This document shows, piece by piece, positions 3,827-47,570 of a stretch of DNA of 54,871 nt. The notes below the pieces were generated by a model. That model worked only from the letters and a program-made list of their open reading frames with translations. It made no database searches and was not told the origin of the DNA. Source of the stretch: Octopus sinensis (taxonomy: Eukaryota); contig NW_021833664.1 of NCBI RefSeq assembly GCF_006345805.1, forward strand, positions 1-54,871. Reading direction: 5' to 3'. Position 1 is the first letter of the stretch, and every line of letters starts with the position of its first letter. A program made the position numbers and the translations under genes.

Positions 3827-6208
3827 ATGGATTCTGAAACATTGAATTTAAAAAATGCCGAAATGTACATAACCCGTGCATACTCACACTGCTACAAGGA
3901 CACAACTGAAGGACTCTATTCTGCTTTTTCCTATTTTTTAGAAGCAGTCAAATTAGTTCCAAAGAATGCTCAAATTTTCTTAAAATTTGGAGATTTTTTC
4001 CAATATTTCATGAACGATTCAAACCGTGCTTATTCTTGCTATGAAAGAGCCTACATTCTCGATTCCTTAGTACCAGAAATTGCCATTGCCTACCACGGAA
4101 GTAGCTTCGATTTACTAAACAAAGATTCAAGTCAAAAATACCTTCAAAATTTCATTCGAAGTGATCTTTCTCCTGAAATGATCCCCGCACTCCGCAGACT
4201 GGCAATATTTTACATGTGCAATGGGGAATACTCCCAGTCTCTGCGGATTTGTGACCTAGCAATCGACATTGACAAAGATTGTTTCATTTTTGTAATGTTG
4301 AGAACAGAACTGATTCGACTCAGTGGAATGAGTCTGACTTTTAACCACAAATCTTTTCTCGAAAAGTCTCAAGACATTCCCCAATGGAGGCTTTTAGTTA
4401 AACTGATTATTACAATCTCTTCCCTCAAAAGCGGAGACTTTGAAGAGATCGCCTCAACCCTCGAAGAATTGCTGAATTCAACCAACGAAGAATCGGAAGA
4501 TTTGATGATTTTTAAAGTCCTTTATGCTGAAGTTATGTGCTATTTGGGAGACGATTTGTTATCAGAAAATCGTTTTTTGGAAGCTTTTGACATTTATACA
4601 ATTGCTTTCGACAGTCTCCGTGGTTTTTTATCCCAGGAAAGCAGAGATCAGAAAATAGTTCTGTTTTTGTTTGGTTATTCTGCGTTTCGTCTTTGTCAGT
4701 TATGTTTCCATCCCGATTCTCCTCCTGGCCATGAAACCCTTCAGACATACGTCAAGTTGAGTATTTGGGCCTTTGGTCATTTGGCCATCATGACCAGGCT
4801 GTGTTCTGCGTTTTATAACTGTGCTTTGGCTGCCTCATTTCTTTGGAGAATTAATGGAAATGAGAGTGCCCGTGATTTGTCCGTGGGTTGTGCAGTCTCC
4901 TCTGTTTGTGAGAGTGGTGGGAGTTCTGATTCGTGGCTTCTTTTTGGGACTGTTGCTTACTTTTTCAAGGATTACGTTCTCGCAGAAAAATCATTTTTCA
5001 AATCAATTGATGCTTCTCAACACAACGAACGTGCATTTGTCAATTTGGCTGTACTTTATTACACATGTGAGGATTATGAGCACTCCTTTCGTGTTATTGA
5101 AATGTCCAAGAATGTTTCATTTTCTCGGGATAGTGAAATTATGCTAAAAATTCTTCTAATGAAAGCGGGCACTTCAGATCATTGGGAAATTTTTGATGGA
5201 ATTGACAAGCATTTGATGGTAGCTATTAATGGCTTCAATCCATCAATTTTTACCTATCGATTTTTTGCTGTGCACGTGGCGACAAAATTGTGTTCGATAT
5301 CATGTTTTCAGAATGGAAAAAAATATATTCCGTCCTGTAATATCACTAAGGATTCATCTCCAGAGGATCAAGTCACTAAGGCCATTGAAGGTCTTTTTTA
5401 TTATTTGGAGGCTCGACCCAACGATGCAATGGCTCAGTCTCTGCTTGGGTCATTCATGAATTTATTGGATTTCAAAACATCAGATGATCGGCATAAAATT
5501 GCTTTACAGCTCATCTCAGAAAAGAACGACGTATTTTCTCTCATCCCCGAACAACTATCCAGCCTTGATTGTGCGGTTATATTTAACGCAATGAGAAGCC
5601 TTGTTGATGTCAGAATGACTGGAGAATATATTTCTTCTTTGGTCTCATATCCGGGCACTAATCAATGCGAATTATTAAACGGATTTATTGGCTTGTACAA
5701 CATTGGGGAGTACACTTCTGCACTGAATATATTAAATTTACTTCACCGTGATCCTTTCAGTTTTAGATTGCAGGGAATTACTATTTTTAAATGTGGGAGA
5801 CCAAATGATGCCCTTGACTATTTGCTGAAGGTCAAATGTCCAGAATTAGTATTTGATATTTTCTATTTGTCCTTTCTACTGAAAAATCAAGACTCTGCAT
5901 ATCATGCATTCAAAATCATTTCTGCCAAAAAAAGTCTTGAAGCTCTGTTTGTGAAAAGTTTATGGAAGTTCATGTCAGGAGACAGGTCCCCCATTTGTAA
6001 TCTGGGTAATATACAACTTCGTTCTTTTTATAAAATGGGGAAGAATGATTTTATTCAGTATTATCTGGCACTATTATCCAATGAAGTGAGAATTGCAGAC
6101 CTACCCATTTTTCGACGTATGGTTGGTCAGTGTGAAATTCCACCGATGTGCTTGCCTCCACAGCTCTTGCAAGCTTTTCAGAAACATTATTACTTGTCTC
6201 CGCCTTAG
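3827..6208 (+). CDS. SKIC3: TPR protein, SKI3/TTC37-like, 793 aa from the first ATG; no intron required
   Basis: FLEAVKL...FGDFFQYFMNDSNRAYSCYERAYILD resembles the remembered human SKIC3 segment ...[26 protein letters not shown], with TPR-like periodicity throughout. The track's 3794 start is a TTG. Confidence 0.62.
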   Translation: MDSETLNLKNAEMYITRAYSHCYKDTTEGLYSAFSYFLEAVKLVPKNAQIFLKFGDFFQYFMNDSNRAYSCYERAYILDSLVPEIAIAYHGSSFDLLNKDSSQKYLQNFIRSDLSPEMIPALRRLAIFYMCNGEYSQSLRICDLAIDIDKDCFIFVMLRTELIRLSGMSLTFNHKSFLEKSQDIPQWRLLVKLIITISSLKSGDFEEIASTLEELLNSTNEESEDLMIFKVLYAEVMCYLGDDLLSENRFLEAFDIYTIAFDSLRGFLSQESRDQKIVLFLFGYSAFRLCQLCFHPDSPPGHETLQTYVKLSIWAFGHLAIMTRLCSAFYNCALAASFLWRINGNESARDLSVGCAVSSVCESGGSSDSWLLFGTVAYFFKDYVLAEKSFFKSIDASQHNERAFVNLAVLYYTCEDYEHSFRVIEMSKNVSFSRDSEIMLKILLMKAGTSDHWEIFDGIDKHLMVAINGFNPSIFTYRFFAVHVATKLCSISCFQNGKKYIPSCNITKDSSPEDQVTKAIEGLFYYLEARPNDAMAQSLLGSFMNLLDFKTSDDRHKIALQLISEKNDVFSLIPEQLSSLDCAVIFNAMRSLVDVRMTGEYISSLVSYPGTNQCELLNGFIGLYNIGEYTSALNILNLLHRDPFSFRLQGITIFKCGRPNDALDYLLKVKCPELVFDIFYLSFLLKNQDSAYHAFKIISAKKSLEALFVKSLWKFMSGDRSPICNLGNIQLRSFYKMGKNDFIQYYLALLSNEVRIADLPIFRRMVGQCEIPPMCLPPQLLQAFQKHYYLSPP

Positions 6209-9897: not shown

Positions 9898-11342
9898 TCA
9901 GTGCGGAGACTGGAAAAAAAATAAGGAATGTCCAGAAGACAGTGCAAAACAATCCTCATGTGGATGCCATGCACAATTCAGAATTTTTGACTCAACTTTA
10001 AATTCGTCAAAGGCATCCTCCCTTTTCTTCCGGAATGGGAAATTTATGGTTTTTACCGGCCTAATTAAAACGGGACGTCCACGGGGTGGATTTCCGTTTA
10101 TATTCGTCTGGTAAACATGGTCTTTATTATTTCGCCTGTCAAATATACGGAAGTAATTATTGTAAGAACCCGTCAGCACAAATCTGAATAAAAAATGCAC
10201 ATTTTATCAACCTGTCATTGTGGCTGCTCACGACTTGGAACTTGTCATAAATCGAATCATTTTGATAAAGAAAATTCAACTTGCCCTTCAAATTATCACT
10301 CACTCGGAAGGTCTCCACTGGCCGACTTTCCATGGAAAGGTCCCAAATTTTGATGGAGAGATAATCCCGGGAAATCACAAACTTCCCACATCTACTAAAC
10401 TTGATGTCCGATATGGTCCCCGTTATCTCGTCGTAGATCGAACTCGTCCTTAGTGAAGGATTATCTCCAAATACTACAAACTTCAAAGCAAAAAAGCCAC
10501 GTTTAGAATGATGGTCGCAAAGCGCGTTTTGTCTCATGTCACATAAACGAATCAGTCCTTTGGTACTTCCGTAGATAAAAGAATGTGAGAAGAAATGGTG
10601 GAATTGAGCACATGTTATCACTTCCGACACATTTTCTGAATATTGCGGCTTCTTGTCCACCACATCTAAATATTTCGTCATTGTGGACTACTCAAAGCTC
10701 GATTGGGATATTCAATGTTCCAAATATTTATTCTCAGGTCATCTCCCGATAGAAATGTCTCCATGTCACAATTCGGACTGAGAGAATTTATTTGGAACAT
10801 ATGAGCCCCCACATATGACCTCTTTGGACTATTCTCCACGACCCTCTCCCCCAAAGTGACCTTCGGAAACCGCATACACCCCCCTTGAGGCCCATCGTGA
10901 TCAATATCAAACAATTTGACATTTTTTTCACTCATTTTCCATAATTTAATACATTTGTCTGTTTATATGAACAGTTGGAGATAACCGTTGGTGGACAATA
11001 AAAAACGTGAGTGATTCGGTTGTGGTAGCCAACAAATCGTGACTATTTTGGGGTCAATCACCACACTTTTGAGGCAATCAAATTCATTAATATGACTCTG
11101 GAAGCCACTGTAGAGCGAATATTGGACATCTCCTGACTAAAAGAATTCGATTATTCAAATTAATAACGTTTGCCTCATTAAAGACAACGATTTGTCCTCG
11201 TTTGTTTCCCACAGCCAGCATATCTCCATTCTTACTGTATTCCAGGGTAGTGATTTGATCGCCTGGAATTTGATTAATATGGGATACTCTCACAGCTGCT
11301 ATCGTCCCTCAGTTCATTTATTTGGGAAAGATACCAATTCAT
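9898..11342 (-). CDS. PPP2R2: PP2A regulatory subunit B55 (WD40), 426 aa, 7 exons
   Basis: Motifs [40 protein letters not shown]...[11 protein letters not shown] and [10 protein letters not shown]. Six GT-AG introns (25, 31, 27, 26, 27, 28 nt) give a 1281-nt spliced CDS. Confidence 0.95.
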
Positions 11343-11976
11343 CAAATCTACTAAAATCCAGGATTAGATAATCCAAAATAACTAAATATGTTATTTATTT
11401 AAAATTTAAATAAAAAGGTTAACTATGATTTATATATAATCAGAATCCTACCACACCTAAAAGTATATATCTTACGCGAATTTATTATACTGAAAAATTG
11501 TAAATAATTTATTATTAAAAAAATAAGTTTTTTCAAGTTTCTATGCAAATTTTAGTAAAAAGATAATTGAACTTATAAACCGATAGCATGGTACGTTTTA
11601 TGTATTTATCAAACCACTTGTTTTCAATTCTGGTAGATATTATTAAAAAAATTAAATAACTGTTAAATCCTAATTAGAATTTTTAATTTAGTAAATATTA
11701 AATGTGGAGGTTTCAATATGTCATTATTTCGAGTCAAGTCGGCAATTAAGGTGTCAACCTGTCACATATAATGTGGTTTAAAGCGTGATTGATAAATTTG
11801 TACTATATTTCTCACAATTTTAATAAGAAACTCTTATTGGATTAAAATAAACGTTTTTAAATGTAGATTTTTAGAACCAAAGTCGATCACATAAACAACC
11901 CCTGTATTTTGTTTTTAAATTTCTTTTCTCAAATTTGATGGCTTTACAGTCGGTTGGTTTTTCTTTCACTCTAGAG

Positions 11977-12470
11977 CAGGGGTGTCAAACTCATTTCGCT
12001 TTGAGGGCCGCATTTTGTAACAATTTTGCTTCGAGGGCCGCATTTATAATAATTTCTCATTAAGGGAAGATTAGTTCTGATATTTATTATGATGAATAAC
12101 CAAAATAAGAAAAACTAAAATTTAGTTTTAGTTAATAATTTAGTTACTAAATTATTCAATTATCGCTTTTTAATTTTGGTGAGAGTTGCTTCCAGAGGAT
12201 TAACAACTTTTTAAGTTTTTAAACTTTCCAGGAAGATATGAAAAGAAAGCAGGTATTCTAACCTCCAAATATTTAGCTTTAAGTATAGAATCTGAGTGGA
12301 TTAGTTCCATTTGTAAACTTTCATCTGCATTAGAAACATTAAAAGAGAATGGTGATGCGAATAGTGAAAATTGTTGTTCAAAAGACGAAAAATCATTAAA
12401 TCTTTCTTGAAATTCCTTTAACACCGATTCCATTTTTAATATCTTTGAGCACAAATATTGCTGATGAATG
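11977..12470 (-). mobile_element. hAT transposon 3' end with transposase C-terminal remnant (also about 44428-44921)
   Basis: TIR-like CAGGGGTGTCAAACTCATTT at 11977, preceded by CTCTAGAG (a Buster-type NNNTANNN target). Encodes LKEFQERFNDF...FASPF...LQMELI. Confidence 0.82.
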
Positions 12471-14950: not shown

Positions 14951-16224
14951 ATATAAAAAATAATTTTCAAAAAATATAAATTTTTGAAAATAAAGACTTT
15001 AGATCTTAAAAATAATTTTATGAAACGCGGCATGCACAGAAAATTGTGAATAAGCATGATCATAAACATCCCAGACTGTATTATTAGTTCAGTATAAATT
15101 TTAACTTTTATCTCAAATCAAAAATTCAAATATTGAGGATCACGAAAATATTATGAAAATTGGCGAACTTCTTAGAAAATTAAACAAAAAAGATAAAATC
15201 TACGATTTCTTTGAAAAAAATAATTCTATTATATTTATTATTTATATAAATGAAATTTTAAAGATTTTATAGATTTTAAAGATCTTAACTTTTAATTAGA
15301 ATTAATTATTTAAAATTTAAATTGTCTCTCGAATCCGCCGATTTTTGAACATACCATTACTTTTGAATACACTTTCTTTGTAACATTTGATTGCAGAAAT
15401 CAGCAAAACTTTATTTTTGTTTTCAATATTTTCTAGCGAATCATTTTCAATCACATGTAGCCTGAAGGCGATCTCATTTGTGGTTTTTGACATCAAATAT
15501 TCTATTTCTTCATTGTTATTTTCCAAAGTTTTATCTTGAGAATTTTAACACGTTTGCATTTTTTGATTGCATTATTTTTGCAAGTTTATAAAAAATCCAG
15601 TTTCTATTTCTTGGATCTTTCATGAAATTGTATGAGAAGTGAGTTTTTATTTCTTTTCAGTTTTTATTTCTCCATATAATTGCTACAATCCGAATCAATG
15701 CCGTTTTTTGAATTTATGAGGGAACTATTCAAATTTTAAAATCATGGAGCTGTATATCATTTACAAATACACTTGACCCTCGAAAATTGGCTTAGAATTT
15801 TGTGATCAATTTGAAAAATGAAATAAATAATTAAAAAAACAATGAGCAAATAATTTTTTAAATGCCCTAAATTAATCAAAAAAGTATTTAAGTTTTATTA
15901 AAATGAAATTTGATTCCTAATTGTTTTTTTTATTTCTTTCAATAATACTCGCTTTGTACTTTCTTATTAAAAAACTTAGAGAAGTTTCATGTTCATTCTC
16001 AACATTGGCTAAGAGTGTCTTCTCTATTCCAGTTAATCTAGTTGCAATATTTATTTTGCCCAAATACTTTGTTTTCTGAGATTTTTGTTTACTATGTCAC
16101 GAGCTGAATAAGCTACCGAGCCGGACGCGTTACACCTGTGGACTTAGAAAAAAATTGACCAAAAAATTCAACTTTAATTTCTCAGGTGATTTTGTCAATA
16201 AAAAATGTATAAATTGACAAATAG

Positions 16225-18250
16225 AGACAAGACAAGTTTTATTTCCCAACAAACCCATAAATTAAAGTTAGGGAGAAAGCCAAGAGCAGAACAAGAAACT
16301 AATTAACGTGGGTTTGATTTCATTGTATAGGGTCATTTTATGAGACACCACATGTCTCTTCTTCGCATATACCCAAAAGAATTACATCATAATTTCCATA
16401 AGTGACGTAACAAATCTTCTATCTTTTTGACTTTAGCGTCATAAGCATCTTCGATTTTTGAATTTAAGTTCAATCCAAATGCCAATTTAATAGCAAATCT
16501 TCTGGTCTTTTCCAACTTTTTCACAAAAATGCTACTTTCTTCGGACCTATACCATCCTTGATAGCCATATATCAAGAATGGCTCAATACATGTAGAATAC
16601 ACAAAAAGGAAAATTTCAGGCTCCAAATGAAATCGAGTTAAGGATTTCAACATTCCTGTAGCTTTCTCTCTTCGTGTTTTGATATGATCTTTAAAAGATC
16701 CTCTTCGGTCTATCGATACTCCGAGATACTCCAATTTTCCAGAGTTTTTTATATCTCCTGTATTTACATATTCATTGATATTTTTTCTTTTACTTGCAAT
16801 CCATGTGACTGTTGATTTTTCTCTTGACAGAGTCAACCCATTGTTTTGGCACCACCTCCCAATGTTTTTTATATGGGTTTCTACCCTTTTCCATGAAATT
16901 TGTTTACTTATGCTTGAATCAAGCACAAGAATGTCATCAGCATAAATAATCATACGACTATTTATGCTCTCAGTTTTTGGTAACTCACTCATTACACAAT
17001 TGAAAAGTAGCGGGCTGAGAATTGATCCCTGCGGAACCCCTCTTCGTAATTCAATTTTCTTAGAAATTAAATTTCCAACACGTATATACGACCTCCTTCT
17101 TGAAAGAAAATTTTCTATCCATAATAATGCGGTTCTCCCAATTCCTGCTTTTGATAACGTATCAAGAAGTCCGTAGTGCCAAACACTGTCAAAGGCCTTC
17201 GTTATATCCAAGCACGCTATTGTAAAAAATTCCTTTTTTCTCCTCGAACTATCAATTGCAGATCTTAGCTCTCTGAGACAATCTCCAGTCCCTTTTTTAT
17301 GTCGAAAACCCAATTGATTGTCAGAGAGAAAATTATTATCCTCAACAAGCCTTGAGAGACGATTGAAAACAATTTTCTCCATAATTTTCGAAATTGAGCA
17401 GATTAAGCTAATTGGCCTATAGCTATCTGCTTTTGACTTAGGCTTTCCTTTTTTCACGACCATACGTACAATTGTTCGTTTCCAGGTCGACGGAACATGT
17501 CCAAAACTCCACGAGGAATTGTACAATATATTTAGTAATCCAACTAACGTCTGGTCCGCATTCTTGAAAATACTCATTGGGATGAAATCCCACCCTGGTG
17601 CTTTATTTTTGCAACCTTTTATCGCAGTATTTATTTCTTCTTGTGTTATAGGTTGGCACAAGGGACTATTCAGTTTCGACGTTTCTTTATAATTACTTCT
17701 TGTATTTTGCATTTCTTGTGGAATAAAGGTGGCTGGATCAGTCTCTTGAATTCTGGACAATTGTTTGCGTAATATATCCGGTATTTCTTCCTTCGGAATA
17801 GTAAAACCATCATCTGATTTCAGAGAAATTTCTTCTTTTTTATTACTTGGCGAAACCATTCTTGCAAATAGTTTCCAAAATTTTGGATTCTTTCGATGTA
17901 GCTTTGAACATTCCCTTTTCCATATTTTTTCTTCATTCTTCTTACAACATCCATTATCTTCCTCTTTATTAACTTGATCTGGATTTTAAGTTCTTGGGAG
18001 TCAAAGGAATCCCAACACCTCCTTAATTTATTTTCTAATTTATTCTTCTCCCGACGTAGAGAACGTTCTTCTACTCCTATTATCATATTTTCCTGCGGTA
18101 GGAGATTTTTTCTTTTTCCATAATTTTCCAGATAACTTAGTAATAAGCATCTTAATTTGTTATCCAGGTTATCGATATCTTTCGGTTTCGAAATCCTCAA
18201 AGAATCTATACCACCAAGTTTCATTCTGATCGAACTAATAACAATTAAAG
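16225..18250 (-). mobile_element. Endonuclease-less LINE segment with a complete RT domain (ORF 16387-17859, frame open to about 17980)
   Basis: Motifs KAPGWD, SYRPISL, QLGFR, LDITKAFDSV, GVPQGSILSPLLF, YADD and YLGV. A putative 3' end AATAAAACTTGTCTTGTCT lies near 16225-16245. There is one frameshift in the A-run at 17925-17930. Confidence 0.92.
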
Positions 18251-19229
18251 GGTTAGATCCTTTAATACCGCGGTATCTATGAAATGGAGTATCACCTAAA
18301 AACTTAGAAAATGTGACAATTTAACCTGTAGAAGAATGTTTGGTTAAATTGTAGAAATATACTGCCTCTTTAATATGCTTTGTCCAACATTTTTCTGAAG
18401 ATTCCGACATCATTTTAGATAAGCTTCTCGTAATCGTTTGATTGAACCGTTCAATAATTCCCTGACTCCTGGGGTTATTTGGTCGGCTATGTATTTGCTA
18501 AATTTGGAATTTTTGAAGAATCTCCCGTACGTAAGAATTTCTAAACTCTGTCCCATTATCCGATTGAAGATATTTGCATGGTCCGTTTTCAAAAAATAAA
18601 TCTTTAAGTTGTTCCGCAACTTCTTTCCCACTCTTATTCCGCAAATTCCTTGTGTAGGCATACTTAGAATAAACGTCGATAATTGTGAGTAACCACGAAT
18701 ATGACTCATTACTTTGTTTGAATCTGATAAAAATAAATTTTAAAATTTTCTACCTCCTTAGATCTATCAAATCTATCTGATATCTTTCATTTGGAAGATT
18801 TGCAACAATATGATTTTGCTCATCGCCAACTTTTAATGGTGTGGAAAAACGACACACTGCAAAATCTGACACTACTTTCCGAATAATTTCCCTTTTTATT
18901 CCGAAGTAACTTCGCATGCAATGGTATTCCAAGCTATTGTGTCCACAATGCGATATGTTGTGGATCTGCTTCGCGACCAAATACATCTCTTGAGTGTTGT
19001 CTGTGGAAATAACCAGCTTATGATCTCCATACGGTTGTCACAGATAAAGTCGTCCATTAATAAGAATAAATTTTTCCGCCTTCTTTCTCAATCGGTAATT
19101 ACGCTGTCTAGATTTATGAGAACATGTTTCAGAATCCAAAATTCGACACAAAAAGTCGTATTCTTCGGAATTTTTGATGAATGAACGAGACATTAACAAG
19201 ATAAATACACGCTTATTTTCTTTATTCAT
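18250..19229 (-). pseudogene. Ginger integrase (HHCC + DDE) with two 30-nt introns (18724-18753, 18296-18325) and two nonsense codons
   Basis: Spliced translation IHNISH...SD(F/C)AVC...RYQIDLIDLRR|FKQ...IDVYSKY...QSDNGTEF...SQGIIERFNQT...FYNLTKHSSTG|DTPF. Stops are TGA at 19038-19040 and TAG at 18498-18500. Confidence 0.9.
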
Positions 19230-19769
19230 TCTTGGATTATAGGCTAGCCAAATAAATAATATAATTTATTTGATTTATTAAAATTAGTTATAGTATTTGA
19301 CAAGAAATTAACAAATTAAAGATTAAAAAAAAATTTTAACAGAAAAAAACACAGGTGTAAAGCGTCCGGCTCGGTAACGCGCCGGGCTCGTGACATACTA
19401 TTTTCTTAATCTTCAAAGAATTTTGATTTTCAATAAATGTTTCATTTTCCGTGTATTGAATGCTTAAAAAATTTTCAACTTTGAAAAGATCGAGAATGCC
19501 TGTTTTTCTGATTGTTGTATTATTAATATTGATTTCAAGTTGTCAATCAATGTAGTACAATTCTTTTTTTTCTTTTTGAGCTGAATATTAAAAATTGATC
19601 AACTAATCCATAAATATAGAATTAGCCATTCAAGCTCATTGTGAATTATAATACTAAATGAAGCATTTATAGTCATAATGTCAAAAACATCACGGCATTT
19701 TTGATCTGAAATCACAACTGATTTCAACTTATGGATTCCGCTTATATTTGAGGACAAAATCCGAACTCT

Positions 19770-32190: not shown

Positions 32191-32813
32191 TTTTTGTTTT
32201 CCATCCAAAAAAATACTCGACTTTAAGAAGGTATCCACAACGGTAACATCCCATACGAGGGCTTTCCCGGACGAGTACGGGAATATTGTCATCCCGTCAG
32301 GCCTTTTGCCGTCTCCCTGATCGAGTCCGACCGGTACGAATGGCACAAATGTCCCGCCGATTCGAGACCGGCCTTCACGATTTCCTTGAGGGCCTTGTGT
32401 CTGTGTTCCCTGCCTGCACTCCTCTTGCAGGAAAGTGGTGGCAGTCCCTTTTCGTCAACATCCTCACCGCATCTGCAGCGGTGTTTTGCGCAAACATCCA
32501 GGCCGAGACGGTGAGCGACTCCGATGCGTATGGCAGCATCGTCTAGCCACGTCCCGATACATGAGAGAGGGAGAGCATTCAGCCAGCTGCCAGAGTGAGG
32601 GGCGGATGCCGCACGAAGGCATGCCAGGCGGTGTTGGTCAAGAGTTGCCGAGAGCTCAGACACAGGCGCTCGGCATAAAATAGTGTCCCAGACATTTTGG
32701 AAGGAGAAATCTCCAGGCCTCTCAGAAAAGGAGCGATCCCAGGTAGTAAGCCAATCCGATAAAGCACCGTCCAGGCAAGATCCGAAAGGTTTGAGTGTTG
32801 GACATCAAAAGGG
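32191..32813 (-). mobile_element. CRE-type insertion with 11-bp TSD AAGCGTTTGTT (32180-32190 and 32814-32824) and an A-rich 3' tail
   Basis: SGSWLNALP...CRCG...HKALKEIV...GKRPDGMTIFP...LVWDVTVVDT, flanked by direct repeats. Confidence 0.88.
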
Positions 32814-33744
32814 AAGCGTTTGTTGTTCTTTAATTTCAGTTTTGTTGTCAGTGTTTACCACAAAAAATTAATGGTCACTGGATTGGACCATTAAAGTCTA
32901 TAAAACTATTCAAAAAAGTCGTGTAAATAAATAAAAATTAGATACAATTCGACTCAATAAACGCAATGTTTTCCAGCTTGTTTTCCTCTTGAAACTTTCT
33001 TCTCATTTAATCTTGCTTTTAAAAAATTAATTTTCTACATTAATTTAGTATCGAAAAAAATCAAAGGTTCAAATAAAATTAGTTTTTAGTTTTGAATTAA
33101 TGCGCCTGCTCTTTCACTTTAAACCAAATCCAATCTCTTCGACGTACACACTCACCCATCTCATAGGTTGTATTTTTGAGGGCCTTTATTATTTTTCCGA
33201 TGACAATTTTGTCGTTTTTTAAAATTAAAAACTTCGAAACTACATTCGTCACTGAAAATTGTCCTCATCTATTCAGTGTTTGACACAATGATGAAATGCT
33301 TTGACAAATTATAGCGTTTTTAACTATTTATTTTGCTCATACATATATTTTCTCTTTTTTTTAAATAATTTGGGATGGATCTTTTTCGACTTTTTTGCGG
33401 TTATTATACGTAGATCATTCCTTAAGAAATCAGATAATTTTATCGAGCGTTAAAATGCTAAAAATTAAAAATACCACGTTCACACGAATAAAAAGTTTTT
33501 TTAAATACCTGTAATTAAAACTTTTATTTCAGATTAATACCAAATTACAAAATAATATCACAAAATTAATTTAGGGTTAGTTTAATGATCCCTTTCGATA
33601 TTTACAAAGAAAATATTGTTCAAAAATGCTGTTTTTTTAAAAAACGGTTTTTTTGTATATTTGTTTAAATACTTAAATATTGTTTTATAAAAATTCAAGT
33701 TAAATAAATTATTACTAAGGAACACTTATTTTATAAAATTAGAA

Positions 33745-35176
33745 ATGTCAAAGTTGACACAAATTAAAGAAAAATTAAATAGTCCAGATTATTCAGAAAA
33801 TGGTGATTCTAACATTAATTACTACTTAAATAGAAATATTCAATCTAACAGCCCCAAGCGAGTGCTTCGAGAAATATAATCCAAATATATTAAACATGCA
33901 AATTAAATGGAATAATAAACCTCAAAAGCAGACAAGAGAATTGACGTATATTAAAGAGTCGTCACAACTATGGATGAAGAAGCTGTTGAAAAGAATAAAC
34001 AGTCTTTGCATCGACTTCAATTTTACATTGTGCAAAAAACGTCCAGAACAAGAAAGAAGAAAGATTTCACTTTATTGGAAAGAAATGAGTAGCATTCGCC
34101 AACAGAAAAAAGATCTCAGGCCAATTTATAACAGCAACGACTTACTAAATTTGATTACAGAAATGAGGAATCCAAACCTAAAGGCGGATTGTGGCTCTGA
34201 CCATTCCCTTCCAGCTCTTCTTCAACTACGTCTAAAATGGCTTTCATTTGTTGATGTAAAGAACAGATTTGCAACATTGCTTGATGCCATTATTAACAAA
34301 GAACAAGCAGAAAATGTTTTTGAGGTTTTAGACTCACAGGAAGTCAAAGGCGCGTTAGAAATCTGTAAAACTGGTTGCCCTCCTGGAAACCGTGGTTCCC
34401 TCTGGAAATTAGCAGTTGGTCTGGACGAGCAGAGAAACAATCAGAATTATTACCAGTACATGAAAGATTTGTATCTTGAATATGAAATGATGATCGATTC
34501 AATAATTGAAGAGGATATTGCAGGGACAGTAACAAATGACGATCAGTACTTTGTTTTTGAAGAATTTATCTACCAAATCCTCCTGCCTTTCACAAGAGAT
34601 CCTCACGTGAGAGAGACCATGAGATCTTTGAATGATGATCGACTGTTAGTACTCAACCAAAAAGAGTTGGTTATGTATCCACCAAATGGATACGTTCCAT
34701 ATTTGGGTTTCAGTTACTTAGTTGCTCCATTTTGTTACCTCTATACAAATATTGAAGACATTTATTTTGTTTTTCGGGAATTTTTTGAGCGTCATTTTAT
34801 ATTTTTGACAACAATATCATCACATGAAGAGTCTATTCTATCACTTTGCGTTCAATTTGAACAACTTTTAATTGAACGAGAACCATACTTGTGTTTTCAT
34901 ATGAAAAAAATTGGGATTTATCCGTTAACCATCGCGTTCAAGTGGATCGTGAACGGATTCTCGGGATTTTTGGCTAATGAGGAACTACTTTGCTTATGGG
35001 ATTGGATCATTGGGCAATCGAGTTTGCTCGTCATTCCAATATTGGCTGTTTCTATTTTTTCATTTCGACAAGCAAGTGTGGTAAATGTAAATACTGTACA
35101 AGACATCCAAAACATTTTTGCTGACATTTCAAATATTAGAGTGGTTGCTCTAATGATACATTTTTTTATTTTATAG
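33745..35176 (+). CDS. TBC1D19: TBC1D19, duplicate copy (3 amino acid differences)
   Basis: Same structure at offset 32453; differences are E/D, D/E and N/K. Confidence 0.9.
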
Positions 35177-36279
35177 TTTATTTTTATATTTAAAGACAAT
35201 TTTTGAATTTATTCAAATCCTAAGGTAATCCGTCGAGACTTCCTGTGTTTTTGGGGCCAAGACGCTTGCTCATCTTAAGAAACTTGGCCGCCTGTGCACC
35301 TACCGCTCCAGAGATCCGAAGGAATTTATATTCCTTATTCAGAGGATCTCGCTGGCTGTTTTACGCGGGAATTGTCTTTCAATCCTGCGAGACAGTACAT
35401 AATGGCTAGATTTTTTTAACGATCTCTCTTTTTTAAAAAAAATTAACATTTGCAGATTATTAAAAGACGGATTGTTTGTCGAATCGGAAATGAGTATTGG
35501 TTTGAAATTATGAATCACCAAGAACTACTAAATGGAGTTTTAAATAAAGAATTTTCTATCCACTTTATATAGTTTAACTATAGTATTTTGTGTTTTACAC
35601 TAATATGTTTGATGCAAAGTTTATATTAGCTATAAATAAACGTTGTTAAGAATATTTTTAAGAATAAAACTCAGAATTTTGAACAATTTTTTTGACACAA
35701 TTTTGAGCAGTTTGGCGATCCGCCAGGCTGCTTCCTTTCGATTAATCGATATTAATTAATAACGAATCTTATTAAATATATAGATTATTGTTAATTTTAA
35801 TAAAATCGATAAAGAAATTCATTAAATTTTATTATTTGATATCAAAATCATGTTATCGATCTAATTTGTTCAGACATTTTTTCCTAGTGAAGCATTTTGG
35901 GTAACATCTACGAATTTGTAAAGGAGGAATAATAAACACGGAAAACATTTCAGTAGCGCCCAATAGCCCCTAATTATTGTGTATCAAAGTATGCAATTCA
36001 GGGCTTTTCGTAGGTTTTCAGGTTGTCTGCTAATTATTAAAAACTTCTCTCAATGTAAATTCGGAAAAGCATCATTCTTGAAATCTTTACAAAATTGTCA
36101 GATTTGTTTAAACAAGTAGTTAGTTATGCCAAAATTTAATTTTTATTAATCAAAATATTGGAAAATAAATTTAATTATTTTTTTTACATATTTATGATTA
36201 TATTTTTATAACATATTATCATAAATAAAATAAATAACGAAAGAACTTGTTGTTGTTTATATTTTTGCTGGCTACAAAT

Positions 36280-38661
36280 ATGGATTCTGAAACATTGAAT
36301 TTAAAAAATGCCGAAATGTACATAACCCGTGCATACTCACACTGCTACAAGGACACAACTGAAGGACTCTATTCTGCTTTTTCCTATTTTTTAGAAGCAG
36401 TCAAATTAGTTCCAAAGAATGCTCAAATTTTCTTAAAATTTGGAGATTTTTTCCAATATTTCATGAACGATTCAAACCGTGCTTATTCTTGCTATGAAAG
36501 AGCCTACATTCTCGATTCCTTAGTACCAGAAATTGCCATTGCCTACCACGGAAGTAGCTTCGATTTACTAAACAAAGATTCAAGTCAAAAATACCTTCAA
36601 AATTTCATTCGAAGTGATCTTTCTCCTGAAATGATCCCCGCACTCCGCAGACTGGCAATATTTTACATGTGCAATGGGGAATACTCCCAGTCTCTGCGGA
36701 TTTGTGACCTAGCAATCGACATTGACAAAGATTGTTTCATTTTTGTAATGTTGAGAACAGAACTGATTCGACTCAGTGGAATGAGTCTGACTTTTAACCA
36801 CAAATCTTTTCTCGAAAAGTCTCAAGACATTCCCCAATGGAGGCTTTTAGTTAAACTGATTATTACAATCTCTTCCCTCAAAAGCGGAGACTTTGAAGAG
36901 ATCGCCTCAACCCTCGAAGAATTGCTGAATTCAACCAACGAAGAATCGGAAGATTTGATGATTTTTAAAGTCCTTTATGCTGAAGTTATGTGCTATTTGG
37001 GAGACGATTTGTTATCAGAAAATCGTTTTTTGGAAGCTTTTGACATTTATACAATTGCTTTCGACAGTCTCCGTGGTTTTTTATCCCAGGAAAGCAGAGA
37101 TCAGAAAATAGTTCTGTTTTTGTTTGGTTATTCTGCGTTTCGTCTTTGTCAGTTATGTTTCCATCCCGATTCTCCTCCTGGCCATGAAACCCTTCAGACA
37201 TACGTCAAGTTGAGTATTTGGGCCTTTGGTCATTTGGCCATCATGACCAGGCTGTGTTCTGCGTTTTATAACTGTGCTTTGGCTGCCTCATTTCTTTGGA
37301 GAATTAATGGAAATGAGAGTGCCCGTGATTTGTCCGTGGGTTGTGCAGTCTCCTCTGTTTGTGAGAGTGGTGGGAGTTCTGATTCGTGGCTTCTTTTTGG
37401 GACTGTTGCTTACTTTTTCAAGGATTACGTTCTCGCAGAAAAATCATTTTTCAAATCAATTGATGCTTCTCAACACAACGAACGTGCATTTGTCAATTTG
37501 GCTGTACTTTATTACACATGTGAGGATTATGAGCACTCCTTTCGTGTTATTGAAATGTCCAAGAATGTTTCATTTTCTCGGGATAGTGAAATTATGCTAA
37601 AAATTCTTCTAATGAAAGCGGGCACTTCAGATCATTGGGAAATTTTTGATGGAATTGACAAGCATTTGATGGTAGCTATTAATGGCTTCAATCCATCAAT
37701 TTTTACCTATCGATTTTTTGCTGTGCACGTGGCGACAAAATTGTGTTCGATATCATGTTTTCAGAATGGAAAAAAATATATTCCGTCCTGTAATATCACT
37801 AAGGATTCATCTCCAGAGGATCAAGTCACTAAGGCCATTGAAGGTCTTTTTTATTATTTGGAGGCTCGACCCAACGATGCAATGGCTCAGTCTCTGCTTG
37901 GGTCATTCATGAATTTATTGGATTTCAAAACATCAGATGATCGGCATAAAATTGCTTTACAGCTCATCTCAGAAAAGAACGACGTATTTTCTCTCATCCC
38001 CGAACAACTATCCAGCCTTGATTGTGCGGTTATATTTAACGCAATGAGAAGCCTTGTTGATGTCAGAATGACTGGAGAATATATTTCTTCTTTGGTCTCA
38101 TATCCGGGCACTAATCAATGCGAATTATTAAACGGATTTATTGGCTTGTACAACATTGGGGAGTACACTTCTGCACTGAATATATTAAATTTACTTCACC
38201 GTGATCCTTTCAGTTTTAGATTGCAGGGAATTACTATTTTTAAATGTGGGAGACCAAATGATGCCCTTGACTATTTGCTGAAGGTCAAATGTCCAGAATT
38301 AGTATTTGATATTTTCTATTTGTCCTTTCTACTGAAAAATCAAGACTCTGCATATCATGCATTCAAAATCATTTCTGCCAAAAAAAGTCTTGAAGCTCTG
38401 TTTGTGAAAAGTTTATGGAAGTTCATGTCAGGAGACAGGTCCCCCATTTGTAATCTGGGTAATATACAACTTCGTTCTTTTTATAAAATGGGGAAGAATG
38501 ATTTTATTCAGTATTATCTGGCACTATTATCCAATGAAGTGAGAATTGCAGACCTACCCATTTTTCGACGTATGGTTGGTCAGTGTGAAATTCCACCGAT
38601 GTGCTTGCCTCCACAGCTCTTGCAAGCTTTTCAGAAACATTATTACTTGTCTCCGCCTTAG
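36280..38661 (+). CDS. SKIC3: SKI3/TTC37-like TPR protein, duplicate copy
   Basis: The translation in the ORF track appears identical to copy 1. Confidence 0.62.
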   Translation: MDSETLNLKNAEMYITRAYSHCYKDTTEGLYSAFSYFLEAVKLVPKNAQIFLKFGDFFQYFMNDSNRAYSCYERAYILDSLVPEIAIAYHGSSFDLLNKDSSQKYLQNFIRSDLSPEMIPALRRLAIFYMCNGEYSQSLRICDLAIDIDKDCFIFVMLRTELIRLSGMSLTFNHKSFLEKSQDIPQWRLLVKLIITISSLKSGDFEEIASTLEELLNSTNEESEDLMIFKVLYAEVMCYLGDDLLSENRFLEAFDIYTIAFDSLRGFLSQESRDQKIVLFLFGYSAFRLCQLCFHPDSPPGHETLQTYVKLSIWAFGHLAIMTRLCSAFYNCALAASFLWRINGNESARDLSVGCAVSSVCESGGSSDSWLLFGTVAYFFKDYVLAEKSFFKSIDASQHNERAFVNLAVLYYTCEDYEHSFRVIEMSKNVSFSRDSEIMLKILLMKAGTSDHWEIFDGIDKHLMVAINGFNPSIFTYRFFAVHVATKLCSISCFQNGKKYIPSCNITKDSSPEDQVTKAIEGLFYYLEARPNDAMAQSLLGSFMNLLDFKTSDDRHKIALQLISEKNDVFSLIPEQLSSLDCAVIFNAMRSLVDVRMTGEYISSLVSYPGTNQCELLNGFIGLYNIGEYTSALNILNLLHRDPFSFRLQGITIFKCGRPNDALDYLLKVKCPELVFDIFYLSFLLKNQDSAYHAFKIISAKKSLEALFVKSLWKFMSGDRSPICNLGNIQLRSFYKMGKNDFIQYYLALLSNEVRIADLPIFRRMVGQCEIPPMCLPPQLLQAFQKHYYLSPP

Positions 38662-38733
38662 TTCTTATTTTTACCGTTACTGAAATTTTTCTTTGTTTTA
38701 TTATATATGGCTTCTTTTTAATAAAGGCGTATT

Positions 38734-39195
38734 TATTACGATAATAAATACGCAATACAATTAGCTAATTAATTGTAATTTACTAGAAGTTAATAAAGCC
38801 ATCCATCCGAAGTGGACCCCGCCAACATAATTGACGTTGCGTTGCCTCTCACGATAGCAACGGAGATCAACTGGAGAAGCCACCGGGTCTCACGTGTGTC
38901 GTGGCTTTTTAATGTGACTAAGCGTCCAAGGTTCTTTAGGAAGTGAAGCGATTTCCCACTTATTCCTCCAGTTGTCTCGACCACAATCGGACAGAACACA
39001 AATCGGTCTCGCAGCGCTTCATATTTTCTCTTCTTTGCCCTCATCGTTGTTTCCGCGCCATACAGTGTGTCCACTGCGCTCCCGGCAATGTTGGACGGGT
39101 AGAGTGTGTCTACACAGGTTGCGTCCCAGACTAGGGGTTTCCCCTCTTTAAATAGGAAAATTGTGATCCCATCAGGACGTTTGCGTCCCTGTCTT
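38734..39195 (-). mobile_element. Same CRE insertion in copy 2
   Basis: Offset 32453; identical ORF translation. Confidence 0.88.
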
Positions 39196-42100
39196 GGCGT
39201 ATTAAAACTTCATCCCCATGTTCAATTTCGTCGTACTTCAATCTTCAATTTTTTCGCCTGATTTCACAATATTTTTGAAGGCAATTCTTCGTTTTTTTTC
39301 CCCCTCCAAATTCTTTCAAAGCGAAGTAAAATAGCCTTCAAAATCTAATAGTGCTTGCAATTTTTTTTTTCATATTTTTTTAGAAAGATCCAAATTAAAA
39401 AAATTCCAATGGTCTTTGCTTTCTTGTATCGTGGATAGAATAGTTGTAATCACGAACAATGTCTCTTATCAAATGAATATAACATTCAAAATTGCCTCTC
39501 GATACACTAGAGAATGAGATCCATCGTTTTACCATCGACTTGTCCCCGTATTGTGGCCATCCAGTAACATGAGAAATATTGTATCTTTCCCAAACGGAAT
39601 GTAGAATAATCGGAGATCCAATTATCCAAAAAATCATATCCAGGATAACACAAATCTCATTTGCAGATTTGCTAACGGTACTTTCTACTACACTGAACTT
39701 AGAAAAAGAATCAATTAAAACAAGTATCTGTTGATTATACTCAAAAAAATAACCCAGGAATTATTTTCATTTTTGCAGAATATCGCCTAAAATCGACAAG
39801 ATCTACGATATATCGGTCTCTTGATCCATAAGCCATGATAGGTAAAATTACAGGTTTAGTCGCAAACATTCGTTTAGAGTAAACTTGTTAAACCAATGAT
39901 TAACCTGACAATAAACGCATTTAGATACCACAGTACCGACTTCACTACGTATTGCATCATAAATCGTAAGTGACAATTGTGTTGAGCCTAATTTACATCA
40001 CTAAATATCAAATTTCAATATATTTTAGCTTTAATTCAGCTTCCTCAATACAAAAGAATTCCAACTCTAAACCATTTTTAGTAATATAGCCTGCGGATTC
40101 TTTGAAAGTAAAAATTTGGACATATCGTTTGATTTTTTCTCTTTCCCTCCAGTCAATAAATTCGTGAGTAGTCCGGATTTCGTGAATTTTTTATTATTAA
40201 TAATTTTTTCCAATGAAAAGTTGTCTGCAAAAAATTTTTTTGGTATTTTAAGCATTGACATCACCGCCCTGGCGTCTTGCCGCTCTGGACTGTGACATTA
40301 AATTTTAATTCGTTCTATTAAAATAAAAAATCCAATTAATTATGTCCAGTCGAATCGGCATAGTGATTATATTCCTCAGAACATTGTCCTTTGCACCCCT
40401 CACTACGCTTTAGAATTGACAATGCCTTTGTAAACCCGTCTTAATTCATCTACATGGAGAATTTCCGATACCGAACTATGGAATCTTGACTTTTTCACAG
40501 AAAACAACTTCGTGCCCTAAATGGCGTACTCAGAAAATCAATAACTCATTCTCTACAGGCTCAGCAACTCAGCGCAAATCACCCGTGACATTATAAACGG
40601 CTGCTGGAGTCTATTTGGGCACATCCTAAGAATGGACTCAACTGCACCTGCCTACAAGACCATGGAAGAATACTTCCTGTCAGATGGACCAAAATTTCGT
40701 GGACAACGCCGAATAACTCTGCCGGCCGTCTTGTAACAAGACCTAACTTGAACGGGGAAAACCCTAAACAACTGCGATGACCTGAAAGAACTGTGCAGGC
40801 AGAGCCAAAACCGCGGAGAGTGGAAACAATGGTTAAAAAGATCGTATCGTGTGTGTGACGTGTAGGAATATGACTTATTCTGTTCATGTTCTAATGGGAA
40901 GTGTTATAATAATTTTGAAGGAAACCAAAGCTCAATTTCTGACAGAAAAGTGTTATTTTTATTCTGATCTTAAAAATTGTTTTTCGTAAAAAATGAATAT
41001 TGTGGGTTTTGAAAGAAGATAGTAAAAAATATAAACGCGCACGGGTTAATCAGTTCTCAGAAATAAATGTAAACAAAAAATTAAAAACATATATAGGTAA
41101 AAATCAATAAACTCAATTTTATAACATCATAATAGTACTTATGAACGTGGGAATTGCATCAAAAGAACTCCTTAAGTCAGTAAATGTAAAAAAACTGCAC
41201 AAGTACGGTTTAGTTTTTGGAAAAATGCGCAGATCCACAATGAAAAAGTCAGATATCTTTATTTTATTTACATTGAATGTGACCGGCTTGGCCGAGATAG
41301 ACTTAGTAGTTTTTTTATTTAACCCAAGAATCACCAACAGTTAATTAGGGTAAATACTTAGGTGATTTCAACAATCCTCAAGATCAGCGGTTTTCAAATG
41401 CGGCCCCGAGGATTTTTTGCGGCCCCTCTAGAGTAACTAACTTTTTTAATTTTTACCAAAGACAAAGTAATTTTCGATGAACTTTACGATGAAAGATGGA
41501 TTGCCGATTTGGTTTTTTATGTTAATTTAACCACGCATTTGTCGGATCTCAATGTTGAATTACAAGGAAAACTCAAACTCTGTTATCAGTTATATGAATA
41601 TATTTCTTCGTTTATCGAAAAATTATATTTATGGATGACTTCACTTAAAGGCGGAGATACATCTCATTTTTATTCACTATCTGAAAACAACGAAGGCGCT
41701 GCTTATGAAAAATACATATCCATAATTGGTGATTTAATTAATCAATTTGAAGCACGTTTTGGGGTACATTTATATAAATTTAATTTTTAGAATTTTAAAG
41801 AATTCCTTCCTTAATGAAAATATTCGCAACTCCATTCGTCCTTCCTTTTGGCGATCTGTTTTTGTTGGTTTGTTTTGTTGTCTATCTGTTTTTTAGAAGT
41901 CATTAAAACCATTAAAAATAGATTTCAAATTGGACTTAGAAAAAAGTAAGATACTTTTTATATAGACGTAATTGATATTAATGAGATTTTGATGCAGTCC
42001 ATTAATATGCCGAATTCATTAATGAGCCGGTGAAATGAATAATGTGATGAACAATATCCAGTCAATTCTACAAACGAGAAAAAATAAGAAAGTATGGCAA

Positions 42101-42348
42101 TTAAACACAGGAATGGCTTGAAATAGAAAATTATGACGATCAAGTTGTCGCGACAATGAATAATCTTATCACTAAACAAGAACTACAAATGTTAGTTGAT
42201 TTACCTAAAAAGTCATAATCCTTCATGAAGAAAAAACGAAAAACTACGAAAAATGACTAATACCGAATGATCACTATAATTCTACAATTTAAAGATGTAG
42301 TCTCTTTAAGTATAAATACTTGTCAAATTATAACATAGAAAAAGTACA

Positions 42349-46700: not shown

Positions 46701-47570
46701 CACTCATCCATCTCGCAGGGCTGGCCTCTTTTCTGGTCGTTCTCAAGTTCGACTCAATGGTTTTACTCGGAAAAGGTTCCTCAGTTGTTCTATTTGTAAA
46801 CCGAGTCCTGCGCGATCATTCCAAACTTATGTTCTGCACGCATACTTTCCAATGTTTTCAGAATAACTTAAGCTCGTCTGGGTTCTTTGAGATTAACTGA
46901 GCCGGAATGATGTTTATAGAATTTACTCACATTATCGTCCCATATTAGTATCAATGTTACTGTCGTTATTATGGTTTTATGGATTAGTTCCAATTAATTG
47001 GCAAGTAGGTCATACTTATGGCGTTTTTCCACCTCAACTTGTTTCAGGCCTTTTTGAGAAGTGATCCGATCTCTATGATTGTAATTTTGTTCTTCATTTT
47101 GTCAAGTAAGAGATGCCCGGTTCGTTACTTTTGACTTTCGTGAGAAGTATCGGTTCACTTTTATGGAAAGTGGATACAAGTCCTCTCCCGTGTTGGCCAC
47201 TTGGAAAGTAGAGTCTTTTTTTGTTTGCAAGTTTCAGATGAATTCGATGGTGTACGCGGATATTGCGTACATTTTTGTCAATTTGTTAAAATTCGGGCTG
47301 TTCAATATCGACGAGCCCAGTTTTGACCTTTTTTCCAATCTGGCGGTTATGCAAATATTTATAGGTCATGCATAAAAATAAGTGATTTGTCGTATATGTG
47401 ATACAACATGATCTTGGGATATAAAAAATAATTTTCAAAAAATATAAATTTTTGAAAATAAAGACTTTAGATCTTAAAAATAATTTTATGAAACGCGGCA
47501 TGCACAGAAAATTGTGAATAAGCATGATCATAAACATCCCAGACTGTATTATTAGTTCAGTATAAATTTT

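Follow-up and report, generated by a model that had tools for sequence, protein, structure and literature searches.

An apparent integrase–reverse transcriptase fusion is very probably a truncated LINE nested in frame within a Ginger2/TDD-type transposon

Introduction

Ginger2/TDD transposons have TGTNR...YNACA termini and target-site duplications (TSDs) of 4–5 bp at AT-rich targets (Bao, Kapitonov & Jurka 2010, PMC2836005), and they encode a single H2C2 and DDE transposase without a native reverse transcriptase (RT). The same paper discusses the hypothesis that LTR retrotransposons originated from a non-LTR RT and a DNA-transposon integrase. Two further systems bear on the present locus: 5'-truncated nested LINE insertions, among them some that remove target DNA and have no TSD (for L1, Sen et al. 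2007, PMC1920257), and predicted proteins in which nesting has brought rve and LINE-type RVT_1 domains into one frame (for example, P0252 and P0223).

We analysed a window of 54,871 nt (the whole stretch of DNA under study) in which an element at 16095–19395, bounded by terminal inverted repeats (TIRs), carries an integrase-type transposase (IN) that reads in frame into a LINE RT. The original prediction left two readings of this arrangement, namely a chance nested insertion on the same strand and in frame, or a chimeric class of element. Our analysis supports the former: the element is very probably a Ginger2 transposon with a nested, 5'-truncated LINE in its own orientation and phase, and the IN–RT 'fusion' an accident of nesting. 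It shares with Ginger2/TDD (PMC2836005) the TGTNR...YNACA termini, short TIRs, a 5-bp AT-rich TSD as in TDD-4 and TDD-5 and, in its Ginger part, a single H2C2 and DDE transposase without a native RT. It differs in having two 30-nt introns, an internal deletion and a LINE fragment, and in belonging to a subclade that is so far mainly microsporidian (Dictyocoela, Nosema granulosis, Pseudoloma) and has its own conserved C-terminal region. All coordinates refer to the window, and the features described for the element and its duplicate lie on the minus strand, apart from the TSDs, which are given without strand.

Results

Element ends and transposase

The element is delimited by TGTCACGAGC at 16095 and GCTCGTGACA at 19395 (TGTCA...TGACA), and the same 5-mer, TACTA, abuts both termini as left (16090–16094) and right (19396–19400) TSD. 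Comparison of the two ends defined a 46-nt imperfect TIR, at 16095–16140 for the 3' end in the coding sense (TGTCACGAGC...CACCTGTG, with a terminus fitting the Ginger2 TGTNR pattern) and at 19350–19395 for the 5' end. Its outer 10 nt are perfect and its inner 27-nt core matches at 26 of 27 positions, while the 9-nt middle does not match, bringing overall identity to ~80%. The core occurs four times in the window (zero expected) and had no match in metagenome contigs, as expected for a collection other than the host genome. A short subterminal inverted match also connects the two ends (16167–16180 with 19313–19326), its first arm lying in a non-coding Ginger2 3' subterminal remnant (16141–16226) that has no homology to L001, the LINE copy described below.

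Between the ends, the transposase gene comprises exon 1 (18754–19229; H2C2 finger and first D), exon 2 (18326–18723; second D and the E of the DDE core) and an exon 3 remnant (18231–18295) with the last kept Ginger2 codons, ...DTPFHRYRGIKGSNPLIV ISS, which align to SPFVKYRNIKGFNTIIP in a Dictyocoela homologue. The two introns (18724–18753 and 18296–18325) are each 30 nt long with GT..AG boundaries; both carry in-frame stops, and intronless homologues lack them at exactly those points. The gene product contains an rve domain (Pfam E 2e-16), and D153, D214 and E250 of the DDE core are invariant in the homologue alignment. Exon 1 is interrupted by a TGA nonsense codon (19038–19040) and exon 2 by a TAG (18498–18500). 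These observations agree with the original prediction as regards Ginger-type ends, a 46-bp TIR, a TACTA TSD, two 30-nt introns and two nonsense codons, the ends being more precisely of Ginger2/TDD type. It had further described an HHCC-DDE integrase; in this copy the finger is broken and the integrase incomplete. The H-x4-H...C-x2-C finger, intact in the homologues and in a duplicate copy in the window, is broken here by a Cys-to-Phe change at 18862 (SDFAVC, against SDCAVC in the duplicate). Homologues run ~130 aa past the junction with the LINE and include a conserved Y..RMDK...VH.SKYDF..GDKV...SNNR region; alignment to them shows that this conserved C-terminal ~130 aa is absent, and the transposase is thus truncated.

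The nearest relatives of the transposase are intronless proteins of 420–460 aa (43–54% identity) encoded by RT-free microsporidian elements of 1.8–1.9 kb. Two of these, L002 and L003, are complete TIR-ORF-TIR elements with TGTCGCG termini, no RT or RNase H, and 5-bp AT-rich TSDs like that of the window element (TATTA and TTTTA, respectively). RT-free Ginger copies outside the locus, which the original prediction had named as one part of the evidence against a chimeric class, are represented only through these microsporidian relatives, which belong to the same transposase family, share the type of ends and retain the C-terminal domain. In BLASTP against the reference alignment of PMC2836005, the top four hits were Ginger2 (E 1e-25 to 1e-32), and a neighbour-joining tree placed the window sequence and the microsporidian clade as sister to the Ginger2 references except TDD-4 and TDD-5, with a bootstrap of 76 that we regard as moderate support, since this is a distance method applied to 225 columns. 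YPYY-like and GP[YF] motifs are absent from eight full-length close homologues, the corresponding C terminus being missing from the window copy. Sequence comparison thus supports a Ginger2/TDD-type assignment for the ends and transposase, and not Ginger1, Gypsy, BEL or Copia. We rejected identity with GingerRoot, whose TSD is 6 bp long and GC-rich and whose termini are mostly TA...TA, and origin of the integrase from an LTR retrotransposon, given TIRs instead of LTRs, relatives with TIR-ORF-TIR organization and the grouping with Ginger2.

The LINE fragment and its full-length relative

The remainder of the element, 16227–18230, is a 5'-truncated LINE consisting of the post-APE linker, RT and thumb of ORF2 and a 160-nt 3' UTR, as identified by homology to L001, a near full-length LINE on another contig. 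The RT domain of the original prediction was recovered (RVT_1, Pfam E 1.7e-39) together with the thumb region; it lies within an open RT frame of 490 aa (16387–17859), and the named best relatives of this RT are annotated as jockey- or BS-type. In this comparison with one other copy of the LINE, the fragment is 96.9% identical to L001 positions 10169–12174 over 2009 nt, with 55 substitutions. The 38 substitutions in the RT fall on first, second and third codon positions in numbers of 11, 9 and 18, a third-position excess that is not significant (chi-square ~3.5, 2 df) and is thus uninformative about selection. A single difference from L001 breaks the frame, a missing A at ~17943. The original prediction had rightly called one missing base but placed it at 17925–17930; it lies in the run at ~17943–17945, where the window has GTTGTAAGAAG and the sister copy GTTGTAAAGAAG.

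Alignment with L001 established both boundaries of the fragment. Homology covers exactly 18230–16227, beginning at ATCAGAATGAAAC and stopping at CTTGTCTTGT in both sequences, with different flanks on both sides. Upstream of the break point, L001 continues into an APE C terminus with an SDH motif (Exo_endo_phos_2, Pfam E 2.6e-8) and, farther upstream, into more APE sequence and then ORF1, which bears three CCHC knuckles; at the APE position, the window has transposase codons. Beyond the 3' end, Ginger sequence in the window stands against a U2 snRNA gene in L001. The same 3' nucleotide with different flanks marks the true 3' terminus of the LINE, as expected for target-primed reverse transcription. 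By sequence, the LINE part has the hallmarks of a retrotransposed, 5'-truncated copy of an ordinary APE-type (Jockey/CR1-like) LINE. L001, with its ORF1 and APE, is also the APE-bearing copy elsewhere that the original prediction had named as evidence against a chimeric class.

The junctions and the open frame

As had been predicted, the integrase frame runs into the LINE linker without a stop: it remains open over 18295–17820, a stretch that includes the IN/LINE junction at 18230/18231. For a nested insertion, chance gives same-strand, in-frame continuity in about 1 in 6 cases. At the other end, the LINE 3' terminus (16227) lies 132 nt from the element end, in line with the ~130 bp first proposed as the distance to the TIR, which is only 86 nt when measured to the inner TIR edge. 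About 0.5 kb of Ginger sequence has been lost between the two junctions, corresponding to the transposase C-terminal ~130 aa and the 3' UTR, a size we infer from distant relatives (43–54% identity). In agreement with the original prediction, the LINE part is not flanked by a TSD: its two flanks have no word longer than 5 nt in common, and that word is adjacent to neither junction.

These features bear on whether the LINE piece arrived by retrotransposition into the element or was instead captured as filler DNA, through template switching during abortive, synthesis-dependent repair of the double-strand gap left by Ginger excision. Filler capture would fit the internal deletion of ~0.5 kb, the lack of a TSD around the LINE part and the occurrence of internal deletions at this locus (1976 bp with a 2-nt overlap in the duplicate). 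However, the captured piece would have to stop exactly at the LINE 3' terminus, as it does in L001, where a random template switch would rarely end, and inspection of the 5' junction revealed no clear microhomology; we consider this route improbable. The insertion resembles the L1 cases of PMC1920257, which likewise keep an intact LINE 3' terminus and combine 5' truncation (here inside ORF2) with lack of a TSD and loss of target sequence. It differs from them in involving a Jockey/CR1-like APE LINE in a compact parasite genome, with an end, CTTGTCTTGT, that is not poly(A).

We also looked for comparable joins among known proteins. A Ginger2-like IN joined to a LINE RT was not found among the best 150 matches from 1.84 billion representative proteins. 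Four of these 150 hold rve together with a LINE-type RT, all of them large proteins, and a Pfam scan of three of the four (P0190 was left out) identified two as Copia or Gypsy Pol plus LINE and one as a double APE-LINE. Nesting read-throughs such as P0252 and P0223 resemble the window element in having rve and LINE-type RVT_1 in one frame, but their Copia or Gypsy Pol brings its own RT and RNase H, whereas the integrase here comes from a DNA transposon. Exact-product look-ups of the 490-aa RT ORF, a 134-aa linker ORF, the 159-aa exon 1 ORF of the duplicate and a 793-aa host ORF were unmatched.

The duplicated segment and decay of the element

The duplicated locus mentioned in the original prediction is a 20.6-kb repeat in the window, in which 1–20595 matches 32454–51825 at ~99.5%. 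It holds a second copy of the same insertion (48914–50224) with a 1976-bp internal deletion, equivalent to 16744–18719 and with a 2-nt overlap at its junction; this copy keeps the TSD and the LINE-3'/Ginger junction, but the IN/LINE junction is gone. Since the duplication, the duplicate has also received a poly(A) retro-insert, which has a separate TSD. Such near-identical repeats could be uncollapsed haplotypes, and the genome is repeat-rich (PMC6736024), so that the IN/LINE arrangement might be an assembly artefact, produced by wrongly joining a Ginger read to a LINE read or by mis-collapsing repeats. We consider this highly unlikely, because the LINE-3'/Ginger-3' junction is present in both duplicated copies alongside independent point differences, and because the two Ginger arms stand on either side of the LINE in the order and orientation expected, and their TIRs and TSD match.

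Where the 16095–19395 copy has TGA (19038–19040) and Phe (18862), the duplicate reads AGA and Cys, and all four coding differences between the two copies are non-synonymous or nonsense; across these four differences there is no sign of purifying selection. With two nonsense codons, a Cys-to-Phe change in the CxxC and only protein-changing differences from its duplicate, the 16095–19395 copy is a decaying pseudogene. Its RT frame is still open over 490 aa, which shows that the insertion is young and, taken alone, is compatible with expression.

This decay, together with the full-length relative of the LINE, speaks to the chimeric class of the original prediction, in which a Ginger-type integrase would replace the LINE APE in a TIR-bounded unit encoding a genuine IN–RT fusion. 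The frame open across the junction, the shared strand, the intact TIRs and TSD and the long RT frame would all suit such an element, as would a second IN-then-LINE adjacency at 14.1–12.4 kb. Against it, the LINE part matches an ordinary ORF1-APE-RT LINE at 96.9% identity in DNA, and this homology ends precisely at the junction; the conserved C-terminal domain is missing from the integrase, whose zinc finger is broken, and the unit carries two nonsense codons and one frameshift. The duplicates show no sign of purifying selection, nothing comparable appeared among the best matches from the 1.84 billion representatives, and in the second adjacency the LINE is from another family and is separated from the IN by stops in every frame. 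We consequently regard a chimeric class as very doubtful, and a chance nested insertion, supported by the APE-bearing L001 and the truncated integrase, as the preferred reading.

Host genome and neighbouring elements

Host genes in the window, including a PR55 gene, have introns of 26–27 nt as read from homology breaks. Although the best LINE hit carries the label Octopus sinensis, both the window and the contig of that hit are gene-dense with introns of 24–30 nt, and octopus was rejected as host on these grounds; the host is probably a dicyemid. A 793-aa host ORF has no homologues at E <= 0.001, which implies only that the host is very divergent.

The poly(A) retro-insert in the duplicate and several other LINE fragments in the window indicate high LINE activity. 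The LINE at 30.9–31.7 kb, which had been thought a free relative of the nested one, encodes a protein only ~35% identical to it and belongs to a different family. A second, older Ginger2-like relic occupies 14078–13530 and contains the C-terminal motif at 13616–13530, showing that Ginger2 elements of this host do carry that motif. Next to the relic, and sharing its strand, comes a 5'-truncated LINE fragment, itself of a different family, so that the pair spans 14.1–12.4 kb, a mild coincidence; stops occur in all frames between the two, leaving no frame open across.

Discussion

We propose that a Ginger2/TDD-type cut-and-paste transposon inserted at TACTA, resembling its intact relatives in size (~1.8–2 kb) and in its one H2C2-DDE transposase gene, here with two host-sized 30-nt introns. 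An APE-type LINE of the host would then have retrotransposed into it, before the 20.6-kb duplication. Reverse transcription would have begun at the 3' end of the LINE itself and stopped short of the 5' end, which would account for the lack of ORF1 and APE in a copy reduced to the linker, RT and 3' UTR (2004 nt). The ~0.5 kb of Ginger sequence may have been lost as a target deletion at insertion, or in a later internal deletion that also took the 5' part of the LINE. As the LINE landed in the orientation and phase of the transposase, the truncated integrase frame would run into the ORF2 frame by accident. The boundaries, the identity and truncation of both partners and the decay are shown directly by the sequences; we infer how many steps there were, in which order they took place, and that the LINE arrived by target-primed reverse transcription.

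Nothing indicates a functional IN–RT protein. Given the intact TIRs and TSD, it is possible in principle that the composite moved as a unit once the LINE had arrived. It is conceivable, though we give it very little credence, that an intact Ginger2 transposase mobilized, or still mobilizes, the composite in trans and, at the extreme, that an expressed, truncated IN–RT constitutes an incipient integrase plus LINE-RT element. In the first case, a DNA transposon would be transporting an open LINE RT module within the genome; in the second, the expressed IN–RT read-through would represent the incipient type of element from which LTR retrotransposons have been proposed to originate. The element superficially resembles the intermediate predicted under the hypothesis discussed in PMC2836005, with integrase and LINE-type RT in one unit, but both partners here are recent, truncated conventional copies with no sign of joint function or propagation.

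The result mainly removes a false lead, in that an apparent missing link between DNA transposons and retroelements comes down to two truncated conventional elements, one nested in the other. Joins of the same kind become 'proteins' through gene predictors in other genomes. The analysis also adds a Ginger2-type family whose 30-nt introns match those of its host in size, the host genome being compact, with tiny introns, and probably that of a dicyemid, and the nesting of its transposase among microsporidian sequences hints at horizontal transfer between parasites.

Structure of the composite element

The composite element occupies 16095-19395, is coded on the minus strand and is bounded by terminal inverted repeats (TIRs), with TACTA adjoining both ends. 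Its termini read TGTCACGAGC... at one end and ...GCTCGTGACA at the other. The 46-nt TIR is ~80% matching and consists of a perfect outer block of 10 nt and an inner core of 27 nt (26/27 matching), separated by 9 unmatched nt; the window contains four occurrences of the core, versus none expected. Pfam searches detected the core of an integrase (rve, E 2e-16) together with a reverse transcriptase (RT) of the LINE type (RVT_1, E 1.7e-39). Two 30-nt GT..AG inserts on the minus strand (18753-18724 and 18325-18296), each with an in-frame stop inside, sit at points where aligned homologues run uninterrupted and therefore behave as real introns. From 18295 to 17820, the integrase frame runs without a stop. 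With the ends, TACTA, domains, inserts and open frame all as found, the original prediction described the element largely accurately.

Origin of the LINE portion

The LINE part (16227-18230) represents a conventional LINE in truncated form. Its top protein match is P0001, a gene model labelled Octopus sinensis, whose locus (L001) in another contig holds a near full-length sister LINE. At the DNA level, the window and L001 are homologous over exactly 18230-16227 (96.9% over 2009 nt). Upstream of the point where this homology starts, L001 reads into the tail of an APE endonuclease (...VESDHIP...; Pfam Exo_endo_phos_2, E 2.6e-8), a place taken by transposase codons in the window; additional APE sequence and an ORF1 bearing three CCHC knuckles lie still further upstream in L001. 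Both copies end in ...CTTGTCTTGT, beyond which the flanks differ, with Ginger sequence following in the window and a complete U2 snRNA gene, starting 3 nt on, in L001. A common 3' terminus, differing flanks and a 5' break within ORF2 are marks of target-primed reverse transcription stopping short of the 5' end. No target-site duplication (TSD) was found flanking the LINE part. The window LINE differs from L001 by 55 substitutions and a single frame-breaking change, a missing A that this comparison places at about 17943, rather than at 17925-17930 as first read.

The U2 snRNA gene after the L001 LINE copy lies at 12175-12367 (Rfam RF00004, 118.9 bits); this adjacency could reflect insertion just upstream of the gene or a LINE-U2 chimeric retrocopy.

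Truncation of the transposase

The integrase part belongs to a Ginger2 transposase and is truncated. The proteins closest to it (43-54% identity, 420-460 aa) are mostly microsporidian, from Dictyocoela, Nosema granulosis and Pseudoloma. The alignment of the window transposase ends at ...GIKGSNPLIV; the homologues go on for ~130 aa, and the conserved Y..RMDK...VH.SKYDF..GDKV...SNNR region of this C-terminal stretch is missing from the window copy. A second, older Ginger2-like relic in the window (14078-13530, minus strand; duplicate 46529-45981) has lost its DDE core and has many frame breaks, with no TIRs found, and keeps the C-terminal motif (YFKRMNKKINVHQSKYDF at 13616-13530); the host's Ginger2 elements therefore normally have the motif. 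After this relic comes, in the same orientation, a 5'-truncated LINE fragment of another family (13450-12396, minus strand), extending from the APE C-terminus through the RT N-terminus. Two relatives examined, L002 from Dictyocoela muelleri and L003 from a metagenome contig, are complete 1.8-1.9 kb TIR-ORF-TIR elements with TGTCGCG termini and 5-bp AT-rich TSDs, and neither has an RT.

Search for a chimeric element class

The original prediction had also entertained a chimeric class of element, with the integrase in place of the LINE's APE nuclease. We searched 1.84 billion representative proteins with the conceptual integrase-linker-RT sequence, using X at stops and at the frameshift; a true relative would sum both scores and so rank first. 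Instead, the top matches hit one part or the other, LINE or integrase. The combination of rve and a LINE-type RT occurred in 4 of the 150 best matches, three of which (all but P0190) were scanned with Pfam: two comprise a Copia or Gypsy Pol plus a LINE and one a double APE-LINE, and all three are nested transposons merged by gene prediction. The chimeric class is not supported, because homology to the APE-bearing LINE of L001 starts exactly at the junction and the integrase is C-terminally truncated. We judge the arrangement to be a nested insertion of the ordinary kind within a DNA transposon of Ginger2 type, with the frame running on across the junction by accident; the predicted chance of 1 in 6 holds, as a LINE has a 1 in 2 chance of sharing the strand and a 1 in 3 chance of sharing the phase.

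History and decay of the locus

The most likely history is Ginger2 insertion, LINE retrotransposition into it and loss of Ginger sequence. A Ginger2 element would have entered at TACTA first, to be invaded afterwards by a retrotransposing LINE; the roughly 0.5 kb of Ginger DNA now missing, an estimate based on relatives at 43-54% identity, would have been lost at LINE insertion or in a later deletion also taking the LINE 5' part. For L1, insertions that lack TSDs and delete target DNA are on record (PMC1920257), and a 1976-bp deletion in the duplicate of the element demonstrates that such deletions do happen at this locus.

This duplicate belongs to a 20.6-kb segment present twice, 11.9 kb apart (1-20595 matching 32454-51825 at about 99.5% identity), that contains genes for a TBC-domain protein, a TPR protein and PP2A B55. 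The repeat may reflect a genuine segmental duplication, or else two haplotypes that the assembly placed one after the other. Besides the 1976-bp deletion, the segment copies differ by two indels, of 359 bp (47573-47931) and 12 bp, and by a retro-insert of 389 bp. The second element copy (48914-50224) has the same TSD and lacks the equivalent of 16744-18719, a deletion running through both RT and integrase; it retains the junction between the LINE 3' end and Ginger sequence, so the LINE was in place before duplication. The retro-insert (50486-50874, about 390 bp) carries a poly(A) tail, is flanked by a TACTAAAT duplication and occurs only in the second segment copy, and retrotransposition with TSDs was therefore active after duplication. 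Together with several other LINE fragments, it marks high LINE activity in the region.

The 16095-19395 copy is decaying, with both partners truncated. It carries two nonsense codons (TGA at 19038-19040, TAG at 18498-18500), and at 18862 Phe replaces Cys in a CxxC motif; the duplicate reads AGA and Cys at the equivalents of 19038-19040 and 18862. All coding differences between the duplicates (4/4) are non-synonymous or nonsense.

Host and family affiliation

Long uninterrupted host ORFs in the window encode the TBC-domain protein and the 793-aa TPR protein (3827-6208; duplicate 36280-38661), the latter with weak TPR matches; a search of 5.8 billion proteins gave no homologue of it at E <= 0.001. 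The PP2A B55 gene is interrupted by 26-27 nt introns, and host genes at 11124-9910 (minus strand) and at 20600-27100 of L001 combine 24-27 nt GT-AG introns with long exons. Among animals, only myxobolid myxozoans and Dicyema japonicum have been reported to have introns so short (PMC13644364). The latter lives in O. sinensis, and its genome (36.7% GC, 49% repeats) contains numerous LINE ORF2 copies (PMC6736024). We infer that the window is dicyemid DNA, likely from D. japonicum or one of its relatives among the dicyemids. The L001 contig (VCDQ01001570.1), labelled Octopus sinensis, is gene-dense with tiny introns like the window, including one of 24 nt in a phosphatase gene, and so probably represents dicyemid sequence included in the octopus assembly.

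Bao et al. (PMC2836005) recognise Ginger2/TDD elements by their TGTNR ends, by TSDs of 4-5 bp placed at AT-rich targets and by a transposase that combines H2C2 with DDE and lacks both YPYY and GPY/F. The window element shows all three features (termini, TSD and transposase type), with the H2C2 finger intact in its duplicate and in homologues and the lack of YPYY and GPY/F read from eight full-length close homologues. The top four BLASTP matches of its transposase in the reference alignment of that study are Ginger2 members. GingerRoot, with a 6-bp GC-rich TSD and TA termini, is a poor fit and was rejected. In a neighbour-joining distance tree of 225 columns, the window transposase nests with Dictyocoela (bootstrap 100), and the window plus microsporidian clade lies beside Ginger2 references other than TDD-4 and TDD-5 (bootstrap 76). 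The transposase (18231-19229) falls inside a microsporidian clade of P0121 and P0122 (Dictyocoela), P0126 (Nosema granulosis) and P0132 (Pseudoloma), with which it shares the terminal motif TGTC(A/G)CG and a 5-bp TSD; despite this placement, its introns are host-sized. The sequence comparisons suggest that this Ginger2 family may have moved horizontally between microsporidia and this animal parasite.
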